Below are positions 56,485 through 64,000 of a stretch of 64,000 nucleotides of DNA, piece after piece. The position numbers and the translations under genes were made by a program. The notes under the pieces were generated by a model. That model did no database searches and was not told the origin of the DNA. It saw only the letters and a program-made list of their open reading frames with translations. The DNA is taken from positions 21,824,001-21,888,000 of the forward strand of contig NC_047067.1 in NCBI RefSeq assembly GCF_902459465.1. The letters run 5' to 3'. The stretch's first letter is position 1. The number at the start of each line of letters is the position of its first letter. The DNA is from Asterias rubens. Its lineage: Eukaryota.

Positions 56485-57336
56485 GGTTTATGAATGCTTG
56501 ACGCAATCCTCAGATGTATCTTGATTGTGTGTGGTTGTATCCTCTGCTAGGTTTGGCATATATCCCACTTGAACTTTGTTCAGTTCTGTAATTAAATTAA
56601 TATTCGTATGAAATGTTAACAAGATCACTATTCAATCCTATCTCACACTCATTTAGGCACTGCAAGAAGCCTGAAAATCTTTCATACAATACTAAACACA
56701 CTGCATCTGTTAAATGTCTAATGTTAAACTGGAGTATCAGAACCAAAAGAAATGATCACAATTCATATGCAACTTCATTTTGAAAGTAAATGAAACTGCA
56801 TTTACAGCAATTTTCAGATGTCTAGTATGGGAATAAAAAACAGGAAGAATAACAGGAAATCAGCTGACCACATCCCAATTTCAAAAAACCTGTAGGCCTA
56901 AGCATAAAAACTTGCTAAGCTTAATTAAACAATCTTGTCTAACAAAATTCCATTAGGTTTCAAATCGCGCCTCTGGTGCTCCCCCCCCCCCCTCACTTTT
57001 TTTTTGCTTAGCAAAGAAACTCACTTAGCAGTATTTTCTATGGTGTAGGATACACCCATTTTTCCGGCTTCTCAATATCATATATCATAATAGTATGTAA
57101 AAGAAAAACAAACAGTAACACAAACTCACACAGGCATTTATAAATTGGAGGCATATATGCATCAAGACGTATGATGCCCAATTCCGAGCTCTCGTGGTTG
57201 GGTTCATCCAAGGTGAAAGGGGGAGGGGCAATGTTTTTTACCCTGTTCCAACCCCAACCTTCCCCCACCCACAATTGTCAATCCTAACCCTACCCCTACC
57301 CCAAACCCTCACCCCCTCCCCCGCGAATCCAGTGAC

Positions 57337-57460
57337 CCGTGGTTGTGGCTTCAGTATTTGAAGCCACACAACCACGGCATAACTTAAGGGTGCATGGTTG
57401 TTGTGGCTTCACCTGTATGCAGCCACACAACCATGCCACTGTAATGTGCATGGTTGTGGC
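57337..57460. repeat. Tandem hairpin repeats
   Basis: Two hairpins (57337-57377, 57392-57436) built from TGGTTGTGGCTTCA / TG(A/C)AGCCACACAACCA, plus a third half-unit at ~57448-57460. Confidence 0.75.
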
Positions 57461-57905
57461 ACGGAATTGGGCTTCATATGTCGGTTGGTATATATATCTC
57501 ATAATTTGAGCTCCTAAGTCCAAATCAATTCGAATGCATGAAAAATCAGAGAGACTGACAGTCTAAAAAGATGGAAACATTTAATAACAAGCAAACACTG
57601 TGGTATTGAAACAAAATGACAAATACAAATGCCAACTGTCCACCCAATATGTCAAATACCACAGCCATCTTTTTATTATTGTTGATGGCCTTATAAAACT
57701 CCAAAAATGATATTGAAATAAACAGCTGATTTCGCCACTTCAATCACACTCTGTCATTCATATGAACACACACAGCTAGCTCAGGACAGAGCTAACCTAA
57801 TCATGTTTGTTGGAATCACAGTTTTGTATTTTCGTCAAACAAACCAATTTACAAACCTTGAATCTCAAATTACAGCAGAGCATCATCAGTACATTCCACA
57901 CTAGC

Positions 57906-58557
57906 ACTCACTGTGTTTCAGGCAATCTGTTTTCACACATTTTGCAGGTAAAAATAGGTGGAAAAGTATGGTAGTTTTGTGTTAAAAAAAAGACAGCACA
58001 CGAACATGCTTCCATTCCAGTCAGTGTATTGGAGTGAATCTGGTTTCGCTTCGCCCCCATACATGATACAATGAGTGCCTTGCATTCGTTTCAGCACGAG
58101 TGAGGCGTGGACCAGACGAATACACTTTTCGAAAGGGGTCATGTCAAGTTGTCGTAAAGTGAATGTGATTGGCTAGATATGACGTCAAAGGTGGTGTATT
58201 TTGACCTCTTTTGCCCCCCCCCCCCCCCCGAATGGTCCGGCGGAAGAAGTAAATAAACAGGTCGATCATCGATGTGTTACAAATCAAATACATTGTTATT
58301 AAAAGTATCATTTGGCTGTTTTAGGATGTGACGAACTTGAACTTTTCTGCTGCTAACTTTTTCTCCGTACTCGTGAGGTTGGAGGGGCGTATTTAGGCGA
58401 GGGCTCACACCGGGGGCAGAGGCTCCATTTCACCCACGGGCTAGGAGGGCAGTTGGGGTCAGCACGGTGACACCGGCAGATTTGTCATACATGTATGTTG
58501 GTTGATCTTCATTCATGGTTAGTTTTTTGGTTGGAACAAAAAGTGAGTGTGGTAAGT
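57906..58557. promoter_or_regulatory. Candidate bidirectional promoter and 5' UTR exons of CCNY (-) and CNP (+)
   Basis: CpG-rich. ATTGG (58168-58172), TGACGTCA (58180-58187) and CGGAAG (~58240) lie between a minus-strand donor (ACTCAC 57906-57911) and a plus-strand donor (GTAAGT 58552). Matching acceptors are at 56585 (-) and 59235 (+). Confidence 0.5.
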
Positions 58558-59246
58558 AAAGCATTTTCATCTCCATTGCTTGGTCACTTTATTTTGGTGT
58601 GCCATTTTTTATTAATAAAATAAGGAAACTTTGACTTGGTCATGTTGGTGGTTCTTTGAAAGTTTGAGTATGTGAATACATGTATGGATGCCAGAATGAT
58701 TTTGATAAAACAATTATTTGGCAAATTTACACTAGCTAGTACTAGTTGCACTTTACTTAAGTTATACTAATCATAGGATATTTCACCAGCAAGATATGAC
58801 CTGGAATGCCAATGACCTTTTCTGTTTATAAATGTTGTTCCATGGGAAATTTTCATTCATTATAATTTTCATTCATTTTGGAAAAAAAAAGTTTGTGTAA
58901 TGACCAATGATGGGGCTTTGTTCTCAAACTTTCTTTTTAGAAAAAAGCAGTGATCAATGAACCAATCTTCTTCGAAAAAAACTAGATCTAAAATTTTGTG
59001 TTTATACCTGTGTATAGTTGCGATAACGTAACCCCTCTTCGCCATCGGGAGGAGGGTTGCGTTATCGCAACTAACCAATGAACAGGTGTAAAGAGTGAAG
59101 AAATGAAATGATGTTCACAACGTTGGGTCGTTAACTATTCTTTGCATTTATACCCTTTTGGTTGGTATTTGGTAATAAGTTTGCATCAGGTAATTCTATT
59201 TTCTCATTTTAACAATAATTACTTCATTTCTCAGTAAGGTACTAGG

Positions 59247-62200
59247 ATGTTGCCAAACCCTTCATCTAAGGTCTTGGTGCTGGGCACCATCACCTTAATG
59301 GTCCTCCTTCAGATGTTCATCTTTATCTCCAACTTGGACTATGAAACCTCAAGCAGAGAAGAAACGACGCTAAGCAAACTAGGCCAGCACTATCCCTTCT
59401 TGGAGAACTCGACCACGATCAACTACATCTCTTCAGAAATACAAGTAAGAGATTGTTGATTTTGCACTTGTAGTGTGTCTGATGGACTCCATGTTTAGGC
59501 TTGGTTGGAGCGTGTGCAAGTTTATCATTTGTAGGGACTAGGGCCTTCTCCTAGAACTATGAGGTTCCTTTCGCTACCATCTCTACGATACAGAGTGTAG
59601 ACAACAGTGGAAACAAATCATAGTTCTAGGAGTATGTTTGGGGCCTATTATTATCTGATTATTTGTATGTGTGGACTGTCGGGCAATGCCCAAACTTATT
59701 TGGGTCGACCTAGAGTTGCTCTTTACACTCTGTTTGGTCCATTGTGACTCTGGAGCTCCTGTCTAAACTGGGTGTTAAAGGCAGTGGACACTATTGGTAA
59801 TTACTCAAAATAATTATTATCTTAAAACCTTACTGGTAACAAGTAATGGGGAGAGGTTGATAGCATAAAACATTGTGAGAAACGACTCCCTCTGAAGTGA
59901 CGTAGTTTTCGAGAAAGAAGTATAATTCCACGAACTTGATTTCAAGACCTCAAGTTTAGAATTCGAGGTCTCGAAATCAAGCATCTGAAAGCACACCACT
60001 TCGTGTGACAAGGGTGTTTTTTCTTTCATAGTTGAGATACACCAAGTGAGAAGACTGGTCTTTGACAATTACCAATAGTGTCCAGTGTCTTTAAATAAAT
60101 CACCAAGAAGACTAGAGATTACCATCCATTTTCCCGTTATACAAAACTTTGTCAACAAAGAGTAAAACAAGAATGTCTGATGAAGTATTGGTCACTCTTG
60201 TTCACAGATGTGTTGCTGTTCTTCTCACCAAATGTGATGTTAGAAATTACTACATTTCTCCCCGTTTGGTTTAAGGTGATGTTTTTTCTAAGAGGCGTAC
60301 CACCTGGCCGAGGAAGGTCTGCTCTTGCTCAAGCCATCGTCGATACCTTCAGTCAGAATTCAGTCTTTTGCTGTTCGAGTCAAACTACCTCAGTAGATGT
60401 GTCTGATCAAAACTGCCTTCAAGAGGTATGTATGGTTTGTCTGTTAATGTTGGTCAACCCTTGGTTCGGGAAATAACAGTTTATATTTTTTACTGTGAAG
60501 GGGTAACTCTGTTTCAACTTTCAGCCCCAGGAGTAGGTGGCAACCTGCCCCCTGGTGGCATTTAGTTTGGGTCGATAGCCCAAATCTGTTACGTGTAGCC
60601 CTCACCTTAAAGTGGCCGTCCATGTTAGGTGATCTCTCACAAAATAACTACAGTTTTGTATTCTTGTGTCATTCTTCCTTTAAAAAAAACACAGGTTGAA
60701 ATAAACTGTAAAAAGCACATCCGGGTTATCGTCGTCGACCACGCGGATAACCCGTCCAAAGACCTGAAGAAATACTTTTCCATGGCGCATCAGTACAACT
60801 ACACAACCGTGGTTGTTCAGCCCAACACTACAGTGAGGGAAGATGGCGGGAACGTTTTACAAGTAAGAGAGAGCAACGAGGTACTACAGACGCCCAAGAT
60901 GCTGTACCCTTTATTCTACGGCTGGTTTCTCGGTTATAATATCTCGTTGGACGTCCAGAGACACAGGAAGACACTTTACGATGAATGTTTGCAACAGTCA
61001 AAGTTTGTGGAGATATTCAACAAGTTCGCTCTTCCAGGTTCCCCACACAATTCATCAGGTAATTTTTATGGGATACTAATTGTCTCTTAAAGGTGGAGAG
61101 GGGGCAGTTTTCTTGTCCTCTTGGCATGTCAATAAGAATAATTATGAATGAATATATAATCCAGCATTATCACACACACAGCTCTTTCAAAAAGGCTCTC
61201 AAAACTTACTTCATAAATTTGGCCTACAATACCATGGTGTGTCAAGTGGTTTAGTTCAATGGACCCAAACTCTGGTGTTGTCAGCAGAAGAGTGTGGGTT
61301 CGAATCCCGGTAATGACGCATCTGGCTGGCCTTAAGCAAGACACTTAACCATATTCGCTTTGTAAAAAGTTGGGAAGGTAGTTCATTCTGCTCTATCAGC
61401 CAGGCTCCTAGTGGATGATACCCATGTCTTATGGACTGTGAAGGGAGTAACCGTGTTTCAGCCACAGGAGTAGGTTGCAACGTGCCATTGGTGGCAGTTG
61501 ATTTTGGTCAATAGCCCAAGTCAGTTAACTTGCCCTTACTTTGAAGTGGCCGTCCGACTGCCCCTTGTGGCGTTAGGCAATATCTCTTTTCTTTTCTTTT
61601 AAACACCACTGCTTAATTCTTCTGCATTATTGACTGTACAGACTAAATGGGTTTGTCATTTTTTTATATATTTTTTTTGGAGCACTATGAGCGCCTTTTT
61701 GAAGGTGAATTTGCATATTAATAATGTTACTATTATCTTGATCCTTTTTAAATGTTATCTTTTACGCCTCAGGTGGCTTGGATTTCGGGCGCTACTTCTC
61801 CCTCACAGGGTTATTGACGGGTCCCACATTACTTCATTGTACATCATTCTTCAGTAACTACGGCAACCGGACTGGTTCCAAGCAATATGCCACCTCTTCA
61901 GCCGTGAAGCAGAACACAGGCGGAGCGTACAACCTATCCATTATAGGGTTCTTGATAACCCCTCAAACATTTGGGGCACGTCTTCGTCTCACAAAAGATG
62001 AACTTGCCCTTTGGGGTGTCGATAATAGTAAAGAGGCTGACAAAACACACACAGAGTCAAATGTCGGCTCAAGGTCGTGGGTCAAGACTAACAAGGTCAT
62101 CACAGCACGTACAAGTGACACGCTCAATGTGGACAAACCGGTTAGTTGCCCCAAGGGTTGGCGACCTCAGGAATTCTCCCCGACCTGCGGTCCTGGAAGT

Positions 62201-62425
62201 CGGGCTCACCTTACTCTTGGCCTGGGAGTGAACATCTCTGCAGTTCAGACAGGCATCGATTTAAATTTGATCATTCAACAAGAACTGCTGGCTCGTGACA
62301 AACCAAAGGACATCCCCACCCTCCAGCTTGCCGGTGGAATCGCCCGTTGCTATGGAGAAGGTAACTGGGCCATATATTTGGAGAAACCGCTTAAAGTTGG
62401 GGCATTATTCAGCGGCTGGAATTAG
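59247..62425 (+). CDS. CNP: 2',3'-cyclic-nucleotide 3'-phosphodiesterase (CNPase) homologue with N-terminal signal anchor (454 aa)
   Basis: Exons 59247-59444, 60276-60425, 60695-61058, 61773-62425; GT-AG, 1365 nt. CNP-like blocks: YPFLEN, FFLRGV..G.GRSALAQAIVD, YPLFYGWFL, 2H motifs LHCT (61835) and GSRAHLT (62207), TPQTFGARLRL, AVQTGIDL, GEGNW. Confidence 0.88.
59775..60094. mobile_element. Complete TTAA-type (Kolobok-like) MITE, family A
   Basis: TTAA-AGGCAGTGGACACTATTGGTAATT ... AATTACCAATAGTGTCCAGTGTCT-TTAA. Confidence 0.88.
61236..61575 (+). mobile_element. tRNA-Leu-derived SINE, body type 2
   Basis: Head GTCAAGTGG..CAAACTCTGG..GGGTTCGAATCCCGG, core AGCAAGACACTTAACC; body as at 9120-9320. 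Confidence 0.82.
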
Positions 62426-62720
62426 ACTTAAATTTAAAGCCTCTCCTTTTCTGTGAAAGTACCAAACAAATTTGTTTAAGCAACCATCTATTCTCTGTTA
62501 AAATAGAGCAATATTGATCACAATGAAACTGTATGCAAATAAAGTTAACACAAAGTTGAGTGAGATATACGACTTCAAAAGGGGGGGGGGGGTAGATGTT
62601 GTGGCATGTAATCGGCACAATGTCCTGAACACCAACTAGTGGAAGTACATGTATCTAAGAAGTAACTATAAATACTAAATAGTAAACTTACGGGTACAAC
62701 CATGTGTAAGATCTCTTTTA

Positions 62721-63080
62721 TGGGGTGTCGTGGCCGAGCGGATAACAGCATCAAACTCAAGCTCTGGTGCTTCTGTTCAGCAGAGTGTGGGTTCGAATCC
62801 CGGTCGTGACACTTGTGTCCCTGAGCAAGACACTTAACTATAATTGCTTCACTCCACCCAGGGGTAAATGGGTACCTGTGAGAGCTGCGATGGTTCTTGT
62901 GATTGATTTAGCCGAGTAGCGCATTTTAATGTTGCACAGGCTGCATACTCCCCACCAGGGAGCCGAGATGGTTTAAGGGGTGATTTAAGGCCCGGTGACC
63001 AGGGGTAACAATGTGAAGCGCCTTGGGACGCCCTCCACATGTGAAAAGCGCTATATAAAAACGGGTTATTATTATTATTA
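62721..63080 (+). mobile_element. tRNA-Leu-derived SINE, body type 1, with (TTA)n tail
   Basis: GTCGTGGCCGAGCGG, ACTCAAGCTCTGG, GGGTTCGAATCCCGG, GTCCCTGAGCAAGACACTTAAC..CACCCAGGGGTAAATGGGTACC, tail GCGCTATATAAAAACGG(TTA)n. Confidence 0.88.
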
Positions 63081-63088
63081 TTTTGTCA

Positions 63089-63216
63089 GAGTGTTGGCTC
63101 TGAAAAGAGCTGCTGTGGTCTTGACGTTTCGAGTAGTTTACTCTGCTCGTCTTCAGGAGAAGGGTATACTGTTTGAAACGTCAAGACCACACCGGCTCTT
63201 TTTAAACCCAACACTC
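63089..63216 (-). ncRNA. Penelope-like inverted-repeat fragment with a hammerhead motif with intact catalytic core
   Basis: Minus strand 63160-63118: TCTC-CTGAAGA-C-GAGCAG-AGTAAA-CTACTC-GAAA-CG-TC-AAGAC. The plus-strand right arm repeats the 3' half (GTATACTGTTTGAAACGTCAAGACCAC...CCAACACTC). Confidence 0.65.
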
Positions 63217-64000
63217 CCTCAAATAAGAGATTTTAAACATAATTGTACCTGCAAGTTTACAATTTAGTCTTTATAGTTCTTATTTTTTCACACTATGCAA
63301 AGCTAAACGCCATTTACATGTATCTAAGTAGATTTTGTCAGACATAGTGTTTTAATCGTCACCAAAGAAATAAACAGTGGGCAAGTCTTCTGAAATCAAT
63401 AACAAAGTTCGAAATGGAACTTTTCACCATTTTTTTTTTTTCATACCCGGATGGACAGTTGTATTTTTAATTAAAAACTTTTTGAATGCATGTTTATATA
63501 TTTAAATACTTAAATATTTATATTAAATATAATGAGGTCGGTGATGACCTTGGCTTGATCGAAATGCTTGTATAATAATCGGGTCATTTAATTTGCATAT
63601 TTGTATTAATTTTTTAATGAGGTTAATGCAGATTTCTACAAAAACTCTGTAGAATAAAAAATACAATTGTAAAGCAATATTTATATTTATTCTTATCTTG
63701 CCATTTAATAGATGACAAATTCCCAATTTTTTAATTACCAAAAATTCAGTTTATAAGTACCTCCAATCTTTGACAAACCTTTTAATTGAATTTTCACACA
63801 CACAAAAATCAAGCAATATGCTAAGCGCCTGTTTAGAGTAGTTTTCTTTTTTAGGTTTTATAACAAATAGATTTTTGATAAGTTACATTTTGATTCAAAT
63901 GATTCCAGCATGTAAAACGCATGGCGTTTACTATATTAATGAAGATTTGAAGATCGAAGCTGATGCAATAAAACTTGCTTTGAAACTTTTTATCAGATCA

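Follow-up and report, generated by a model that had tools for sequence, protein, structure and literature searches.

CNPase is abundant and structurally well characterised, yet there is still debate over what it does physiologically. It has been connected with a pathway that leads from 2',3'-cAMP to adenosine and is described as extracellular, although in vertebrates the enzyme is located on the cytosolic side of membranes. In the lancelet Branchiostoma floridae, a member of the same family has been shown by experiment to be active as polynucleotide kinase and cyclic phosphodiesterase (PNK/CPDase), with RNA ends as its target during tRNA ligation (PMC5434554). For mammalian lysosomes, a 2025 review lists RNase T2 as the sole activity that opens the 2',3' ring, and describes no specific 2',3'-cyclic nucleotide phosphodiesterase (PMC12684396). 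Here we analyse a CNPase-like gene of the starfish Asterias rubens, encoded at positions 59,247-62,425 of a 64,000-nucleotide stretch of DNA (hereafter the window; RefSeq assembly GCF_902459465.1, contig NC_047067.1, 21,824,001 to 21,888,000 of the forward strand), to which all coordinates below refer. Its features suggest that the product is probably held by an uncleaved type II signal anchor, which would make it a 2',3'-cyclic phosphodiesterase facing the lumen or the cell surface. If an uncleaved anchor and a cleaved signal peptide are taken together, a lumenal or extracellular catalytic domain becomes very likely.

A CNPase-family protein with one membrane-grade segment

The last exon of the gene matches the Pfam CNPase family (PF05881) with an E value of 2e-33 and 116.3 bits, against a gathering cut-off of 25, and the catalytic domains of mouse, human and rat CNPase in the PDB at E 9e-26. 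An AlphaFold2 model, computed from an 85-sequence family alignment, reached a mean pLDDT of 84 and a pTM of 0.81. In Foldseek the catalytic part of this model superposed on ~50 CNPase and RICH structures, mostly at target-normalised TM-scores of 0.85-0.90, with E 4e-18 for mouse, human and rat CNPase and for goldfish RICH. Sequence, motifs and fold all place the protein in the CNPase family. A structure search of the ESM Atlas aligned residues 28-454 with full-length vertebrate CNPase models (TM 0.71/0.77 over 362 residues), indicating that the two-domain body of the vertebrate enzyme is intact and that residues 1-27 are an add-on.

Both 2H motifs of the active site are kept, namely H259-C-T-S (HCT, residues 259-261, at 61,835-61,843) and H383-L-T-L (HLT, residues 383-385, at 62,207-62,215, with R381 just before it). 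By alignment, H259/T261, F264, R381/H383/T385 and V395 correspond to H230/T232, F235, R307/H309/T311 and V321 of mouse CNPase, residues whose importance in the mouse enzyme is established by mutagenesis structures. Within the 85-sequence alignment H259 and T261 are nearly invariant, and H383 is the sole invariant column. The protein ends in SGWN, with the stop codon at 62,423-62,425, and has no CaaX tail. The AlphaFold2 model is disordered at residues 330-354, where a variable insert separates the two halves of the catalytic domain.

Residues 9-27 (59,271-59,327) form a 19-residue hydrophobic segment that averages 2.59 on the Kyte-Doolittle scale, and the protein contains no other such segment. 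The position-independent sum on the Hessa scale is -2.2 kcal/mol for residues 9-27 versus +5.7 for the next best segment. AlphaFold2 places a helix at residues 6-30 and, after it, a linker of low confidence at 33-38. The 8-residue N-terminal tail ahead of the segment carries no recognisable sorting motif. As an indicator of orientation we used the charge of the 15-residue flanks, counting the free N-terminus, such that a negative C-minus-N difference predicts an N-in/C-out (type II) arrangement. A. rubens, A. amurensis and Patiria each give a value of -5, a third forcipulatid gives -4 and Acanthaster 0. A preliminary description of this locus, drawn from the letters of the window, had reported a CNPase homologue with both 2H motifs intact, no CaaX tail, a hydrophobic segment at residues 9-27 and eight N-x-S/T sequons; the comparisons above and below bear out each of these statements, and the hydrophobic segment proved to be the only one of membrane grade. 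A search of the full-text literature, with noisy rankings and incomplete coverage, returned no account of any CNPase-type enzyme that is secreted, lumenal or membrane-spanning, nor of the topology of this protein; automatic databases may already flag the helix.

The structure of the gene was resolved with assembled RNA contigs from four public runs (X1, X2 and X8, which share a species label, and X3 from a second species) placed on 57,000-62,900. Junctions were settled after handling a few ambiguous bases each, and contigs of this kind demonstrate presence, not absence. On the + strand, four coding exons follow one non-coding 5' exon, the resolved exons being 58,237-58,551, 59,235-59,444, 60,276-60,425, 60,695-61,058 and 61,773-62,685, with GT-AG borders at every intron. 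A single 1896-nt contig of run X1 spans all five (58,291-58,550, 59,234-59,446, 60,282-60,423, 60,693-61,054 and 61,769-62,685), and runs X2, X8 and X3 contain matching pieces. These contigs upheld the exon model of the preliminary description, with the correction that coding exon 3 ends at 61,058 and coding exon 4 starts at 61,773, splitting a codon. They also include coding exon 1, which had been left for confirmation by RNA, spliced into the mRNA in both species; in run X3 this exon differs at 7 of 208 aligned bases.

Contigs of all four runs join the non-coding 5' untranslated region (UTR) exon, from ~58,237 or 58,291 to 58,551 (donor GT at 58,552), to 59,234/59,235. The 5' UTR continues over 59,235-59,246, and direct reading finds an in-frame TAA in the first three bases of this second exon (59,235-59,237). 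Because this codon closes the frame upstream, the ATG at 59,247 is fixed as the start of this transcript; an upstream extension of the reading frame was considered and ruled out by the same stop. The coding sequence of 1365 nt specifies 454 aa. Coding exon 1 (59,247-59,444, residues 1-66) encodes the 8-residue tail, the hydrophobic segment, an acidic Ser/Thr-rich linker and the sequon at N54, and coding exon 2 (60,276-60,425, residues 67-116) begins the P-loop-kinase-like domain. The remainder of that domain, the start of the CNPase domain and the sequons at N151, N160, N198 and N235 fall in coding exon 3 (60,695-61,058, residues 117-238, the last codon split). Coding exon 4 (61,773-62,425 including the stop) encodes the CNPase catalytic domain recognised by Pfam, PDB and Foldseek comparisons, the variable insert at ~residues 320-362, the sequons at N269, N291 and N391, and the C-terminus. 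The 3' UTR occupies 62,426-62,685, with RNA contigs reaching 62,685-62,719 and an AATAAA at 62,538. The 454-aa product is identical at every residue to RefSeq XP_033628527.1, which is named "CNPase-like isoform X1" of Asterias rubens. Public annotation thus contains the gene model, and novelty sits in the topology.

Conservation of the segment and the sequons

We found the anchor in five starfish, namely A. rubens, A. amurensis, the third forcipulatid (GCA_014845345.1), Acanthaster planci and Patiria miniata, including both RefSeq isoforms of each of the last two species. Its sequence is well conserved across orders, with LMVLLQ invariant. The homologues of the two sea urchins, the sea cucumber and the crinoid sampled (Strongylocentrotus purpuratus, Diadema, Apostichopus japonicus and Anneissia) have no anchor, and those of S. 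purpuratus and A. japonicus start with the myristoylation-type MG motifs MGSVFG and MGIFSS, respectively. In the hemichordate Glandiceps (P0007) and in amphioxus (P0010) an N-terminal hydrophobic segment is followed by a basic cluster, giving C-minus-N differences of +6 and +2. Since the anchor is confined to starfish among the echinoderms sampled, and the charge bias in hemichordate and amphioxus is the opposite one, the starfish arrangement is derived. The suggestion that it could represent an ancestral mode of the family is not supported by the taxon distribution and was rejected on that ground.

The eight sequons of the A. rubens protein lie at N54, N151, N160, N198, N235, N269, N291 and N391. 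Their density was compared with that in the retrieved family proteins that are complete and no shorter than 250 aa. The 26 CaaX-ending members average 0.18 sequons per 100 aa and the 13 members with a myristoylation-type start average 0.63, whereas the four complete starfish proteins carry 1.54-1.76, a comparison that counts as one evolutionary event because these four proteins represent a single lineage. All 39 lipid-anchor candidates stay below 1.54.

All five starfish, whose overall identity between orders is ~52%, have sequons at the four sites N151, N160, N198 and N235. In the homologues from sea urchins, sea cucumber and crinoid the corresponding columns lack a sequon, and the hemichordate alone has one of them, at N151. 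Elsewhere the sites are gained and lost: N54 and N269 are confined to forcipulatids, N291 is found also in Patiria, N391 is specific to Asterias, and three others are restricted to valvatids. Each starfish species still keeps 7-8 sequons. Asparagines in sequons are conserved more often than other asparagines (5/8 vs 3/19, Fisher P 0.027). The preliminary description had proposed a check of conservation in related animals: the anchor and four sequons are kept in five starfish, and both are absent from the other echinoderm homologues sampled. Taken together, these findings indicate that the sequons are enriched relative to those of related proteins and conserved in position.

Several further observations were made among the relatives. 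The orthologue of the third forcipulatid (L002:257-2376, 79% identity) lies on contig JACSEG010005034.1 of 2762 nt, in which exons 1-3 are joined and a gap remains at the position of intron 3; the contig resembles a partly spliced cDNA in an assembly labelled as genomic. Membrane and secretion signals are diverse across the family, with CaaX boxes in vertebrates and MG-type myristoylation motifs in many invertebrates. Starts resembling signal peptides were seen in the nemerteans Lineus and Tubulanus (P0056 and P0094), in a thrips (P0061) and in a metagenomic protein (P0113), and Lineus and the metagenomic protein also have a high sequon density. In the nemertean members the signal-peptide-like start is followed by the catalytic domain alone. 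These starts hint that nemerteans and some arthropods may have undergone similar relocations independently. Of the catalytic domains outside starfish, the closest (P0002) comes from a 1312-nt marine metagenome scaffold, which is too short to show an upstream exon. Word-indexed searches, which are insensitive (a sea urchin query missed the starfish proteins themselves) and of which one was limited to 8000 candidates, gave no second, cytosolic starfish paralogue, and none was among the 20 named matches, the ten best-scoring included, of an exhaustive profile search, a result that does not establish absence.

Orientation, isoform X2 and elements within the introns

Several points weigh against an outward-facing enzyme. 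All characterised members of the CNPase family are cytosolic and, to our knowledge, so are the remaining ones. The hydrophobic segment followed by a basic cluster in hemichordate and amphioxus is an arrangement that would keep the enzyme in the cytosol, and the flanks of the Acanthaster segment are neutral. These three points would fit an anchor in the reverse (N-out/C-in) or an otherwise cytosol-facing orientation, which would have replaced the myristoyl or prenyl anchors of relatives and left the enzyme in the cytosol. Shuffling the protein's own composition, which is rich in N, S and T, gave a mean of 4.4 sequons versus the 8 observed (P ~0.05), a marginal excess, and the density comparison, as noted, amounts to one event. 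The comparative tests are stronger evidence than the composition shuffle. The positions of the cysteines are mostly common to cytosolic relatives and so do not discriminate; for this reason cysteine count, tried as a marker of the lumen, was dropped as uninformative. A cytosol-facing anchor is difficult to reconcile with the charge difference of -4 to -5 in four of the five starfish, with the gain and subsequent retention of four sequons in starfish, and with a sequon density exceeding that of all 39 lipid-anchored relatives, and we consider it unlikely.

A second alternative treats the hydrophobic segment as a signal peptide that is cleaved off, in which case the protein would be a soluble secreted or lysosomal glycoprotein with its catalytic domain still lumenal or extracellular. 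The N-terminal position of the segment, its positive N-flank, the serine directly after the hydrophobic run and the nemertean relatives, which look like a short signal peptide attached to the catalytic domain alone, all agree with cleavage. However, the hydrophobic core of 19-20 residues is longer than is typical of signal peptides, positions -3/-1 (F-I-S, M-M-S) are a poor match to the cleavage rule, and conservation of the segment across orders is unusual for a signal peptide. Cleavage is accordingly an unlikely reading.

A further point against the anchored, outward-facing reading is that RefSeq predicts an A. rubens isoform X2 (XP_033628529.1, 401 aa) without the anchor. This isoform would start at 60,237, within intron 1, and take its first 13 residues from the end of that intron (60,237-60,275). 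In four runs the depth of the bin 60,152-60,348 equals that expected from coverage of exon 2 only (in run X8, 58.0 observed vs 156.6 x 73/197 = 58.0 expected), and sequence of 60,120-60,275 occurs in only 2 runs, both of unknown library type, versus 12 runs with the exons of the gene. RNA support for isoform X2 is thus little in the runs examined, and a minor anchor-less form may exist. Although vertebrate CNP2 has an N-terminal mitochondrial targeting extension, it is very improbable that the starfish segment targets mitochondria or another organelle, or that isoform X2 is the functional product and the anchored form the minor one, given an N-terminus that is neither basic nor amphipathic, an acidic C-flank unlike that of outer-membrane signal anchors, and the RNA depths and run counts just described.

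Several repeat-like elements lie in and around the gene. Within intron 1, 59,775-60,095 is a very high-copy repeat, with a summed RNA-contig depth in the millions in all four runs and many internal joints. One recurrent joint goes back 320/321 positions, from 60,094/60,095 to 59,775, which suggests tandem or circular copies of a ~320 bp unit. Just past the 3' UTR, at 62,725-62,812, ARAGORN reports a tRNA-Leu(CAA)-like element, where contig depth is 10^4-10^5, and a similar stretch containing GGTTCGAATCCCGG was recognised by eye in intron 3, at ~61,235-61,330. The two are probably members of a tRNA-derived SINE family; an Rfam scan of 57,000-64,000 gave no match at the gathering score. The intron between the 5' UTR exon and coding exon 1 contains, at ~59,018-59,076, an inverted repeat, GTTGCGATAACG ... 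CGTTATCGCAAC, with a GC-rich centre. It is probably another expressed repeat, because RNA-contig depth over 58,970-59,363 is several-fold above that of the gene itself (runs X1, X8 and X3).

Kinase-site decay, proposed origin and related enzymes

The Walker A loop of the kinase-like domain in A. rubens reads GVPPGRGRS (60,291-60,317), compared to the family consensus GLPGSGKS, and does not match the motif GxxxxGK[ST]; it has decayed further in Acanthaster and Patiria. Residues 63-189 nevertheless keep the P-loop fold, matching AAA_33 models at TM 0.65-0.71 by row in the ESM Atlas. In precomputed Pfam annotations the starfish proteins carry PF05881 and not AAA_33 (PF13671), whereas most other relatives carry both. 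The loop is degenerate in most echinoderm homologues, including those of the sea cucumber (P0003), Diadema (P0008) and the crinoid (P0019), while S. purpuratus retains GPPGSGKS. Because echinoderm homologues without an anchor show it too, decay of the loop is not tied to the step in which anchor and sequons were acquired. The kinase site may have been lost before relocation, or more than once.

From the features described above we infer the membrane orientation of the starfish protein, as well as its glycosylation, compartment, substrate and activity. It would be inserted co-translationally as a single-pass type II protein and N-glycosylated, with a cytosolic N-terminus of 8 residues, the signal-anchor helix at residues 9-27 and a flexible stem at ~28-45 that may permit shedding of the ectodomain. 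The lumenal or extracellular side would then hold a kinase-dead P-loop-like domain and a CNPase-type 2H phosphodiesterase domain predicted to be catalytically competent. Most likely, the enzyme would convert 2',3'-cyclic phosphates, whether free 2',3'-cyclic nucleoside monophosphates (2',3'-cNMPs) or RNA ends, to 2'-phosphates, either along the secretory or endolysosomal route or on the cell surface. The substrate would naturally be supplied there by RNases of the transferase type, for example RNase T2, whose action yields free 2',3'-cNMPs as well as RNA with 2',3'-cyclic ends.

The lancelet member of the family is an active RNA-healing kinase and cyclic phosphodiesterase, and the starfish protein probably goes back to a cytosolic enzyme acting on RNA ends. 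The starfish form would have arisen within the starfish lineage from a lipid-anchored cytosolic ancestor of the PNK/CPDase type by the gain of an anchor and of sequons. The fullest version of this proposal, in which starfish moved an RNA-healing type of cytosolic enzyme to the secretory pathway and dedicated it to turning RNase T2-type 2',3'-cyclic products into 2'-nucleotides, is put forward tentatively, at somewhat less than an even chance. If the active domain does face the lumen or the outside, 2',3'-cyclic phosphodiesterase chemistry is used in the lumen or outside the cell in at least one animal lineage, and biochemistry gains a ready-made ecto-enzyme. The locus would also offer a clean case of relocation of a cytosolic enzyme, combining gain of an anchor, gain of sequons and a kinase module that was already non-functional.

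Four groups of enzymes bear comparison with the starfish protein. Vertebrate CNPase (CNP1/CNP2) shares the P-loop-kinase-like and 2H catalytic domains, both H-x-T motifs and the substrate-contact residues. It differs in ending with a CaaX box instead of SGWN, in lacking the N-terminal transmembrane segment that the starfish protein adds, in keeping the GLPGSGKS loop that is degenerate in starfish, and in carrying ~0-2 sequons instead of 8. The starfish protein also has a ~45-residue variable insert between the catalytic half-domains and is predicted to lie on the opposite side of the membrane. The lancelet PNK/CPDase belongs, likewise, to an invertebrate deuterostome and has the same family membership and domain order; in contrast to it, with its intact Walker A motif and kinase activity, the starfish protein has lost that motif, and its predicted place is outside the cytosol. 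The CNPase-like proteins of other echinoderms are probable orthologues, with 30-35% full-length identity and shared FSPT..GSRAH and CYGEGNW blocks. Unlike the starfish proteins, these lack an N-terminal hydrophobic segment, and the 2-5 sequons that they carry all lie away from the four sites kept in starfish.

The second step of RNase T2 and the periplasmic bacterial enzyme CpdB resemble the proposed activity in that they, too, hydrolyse 2',3'-cyclic nucleotides outside the cytosol. They are functional analogues and not relatives, having unrelated folds and chemistry, and their product is a 3'-nucleoside monophosphate (3'-NMP), in contrast to the 2'-NMP released by 2H enzymes of the CNPase type.

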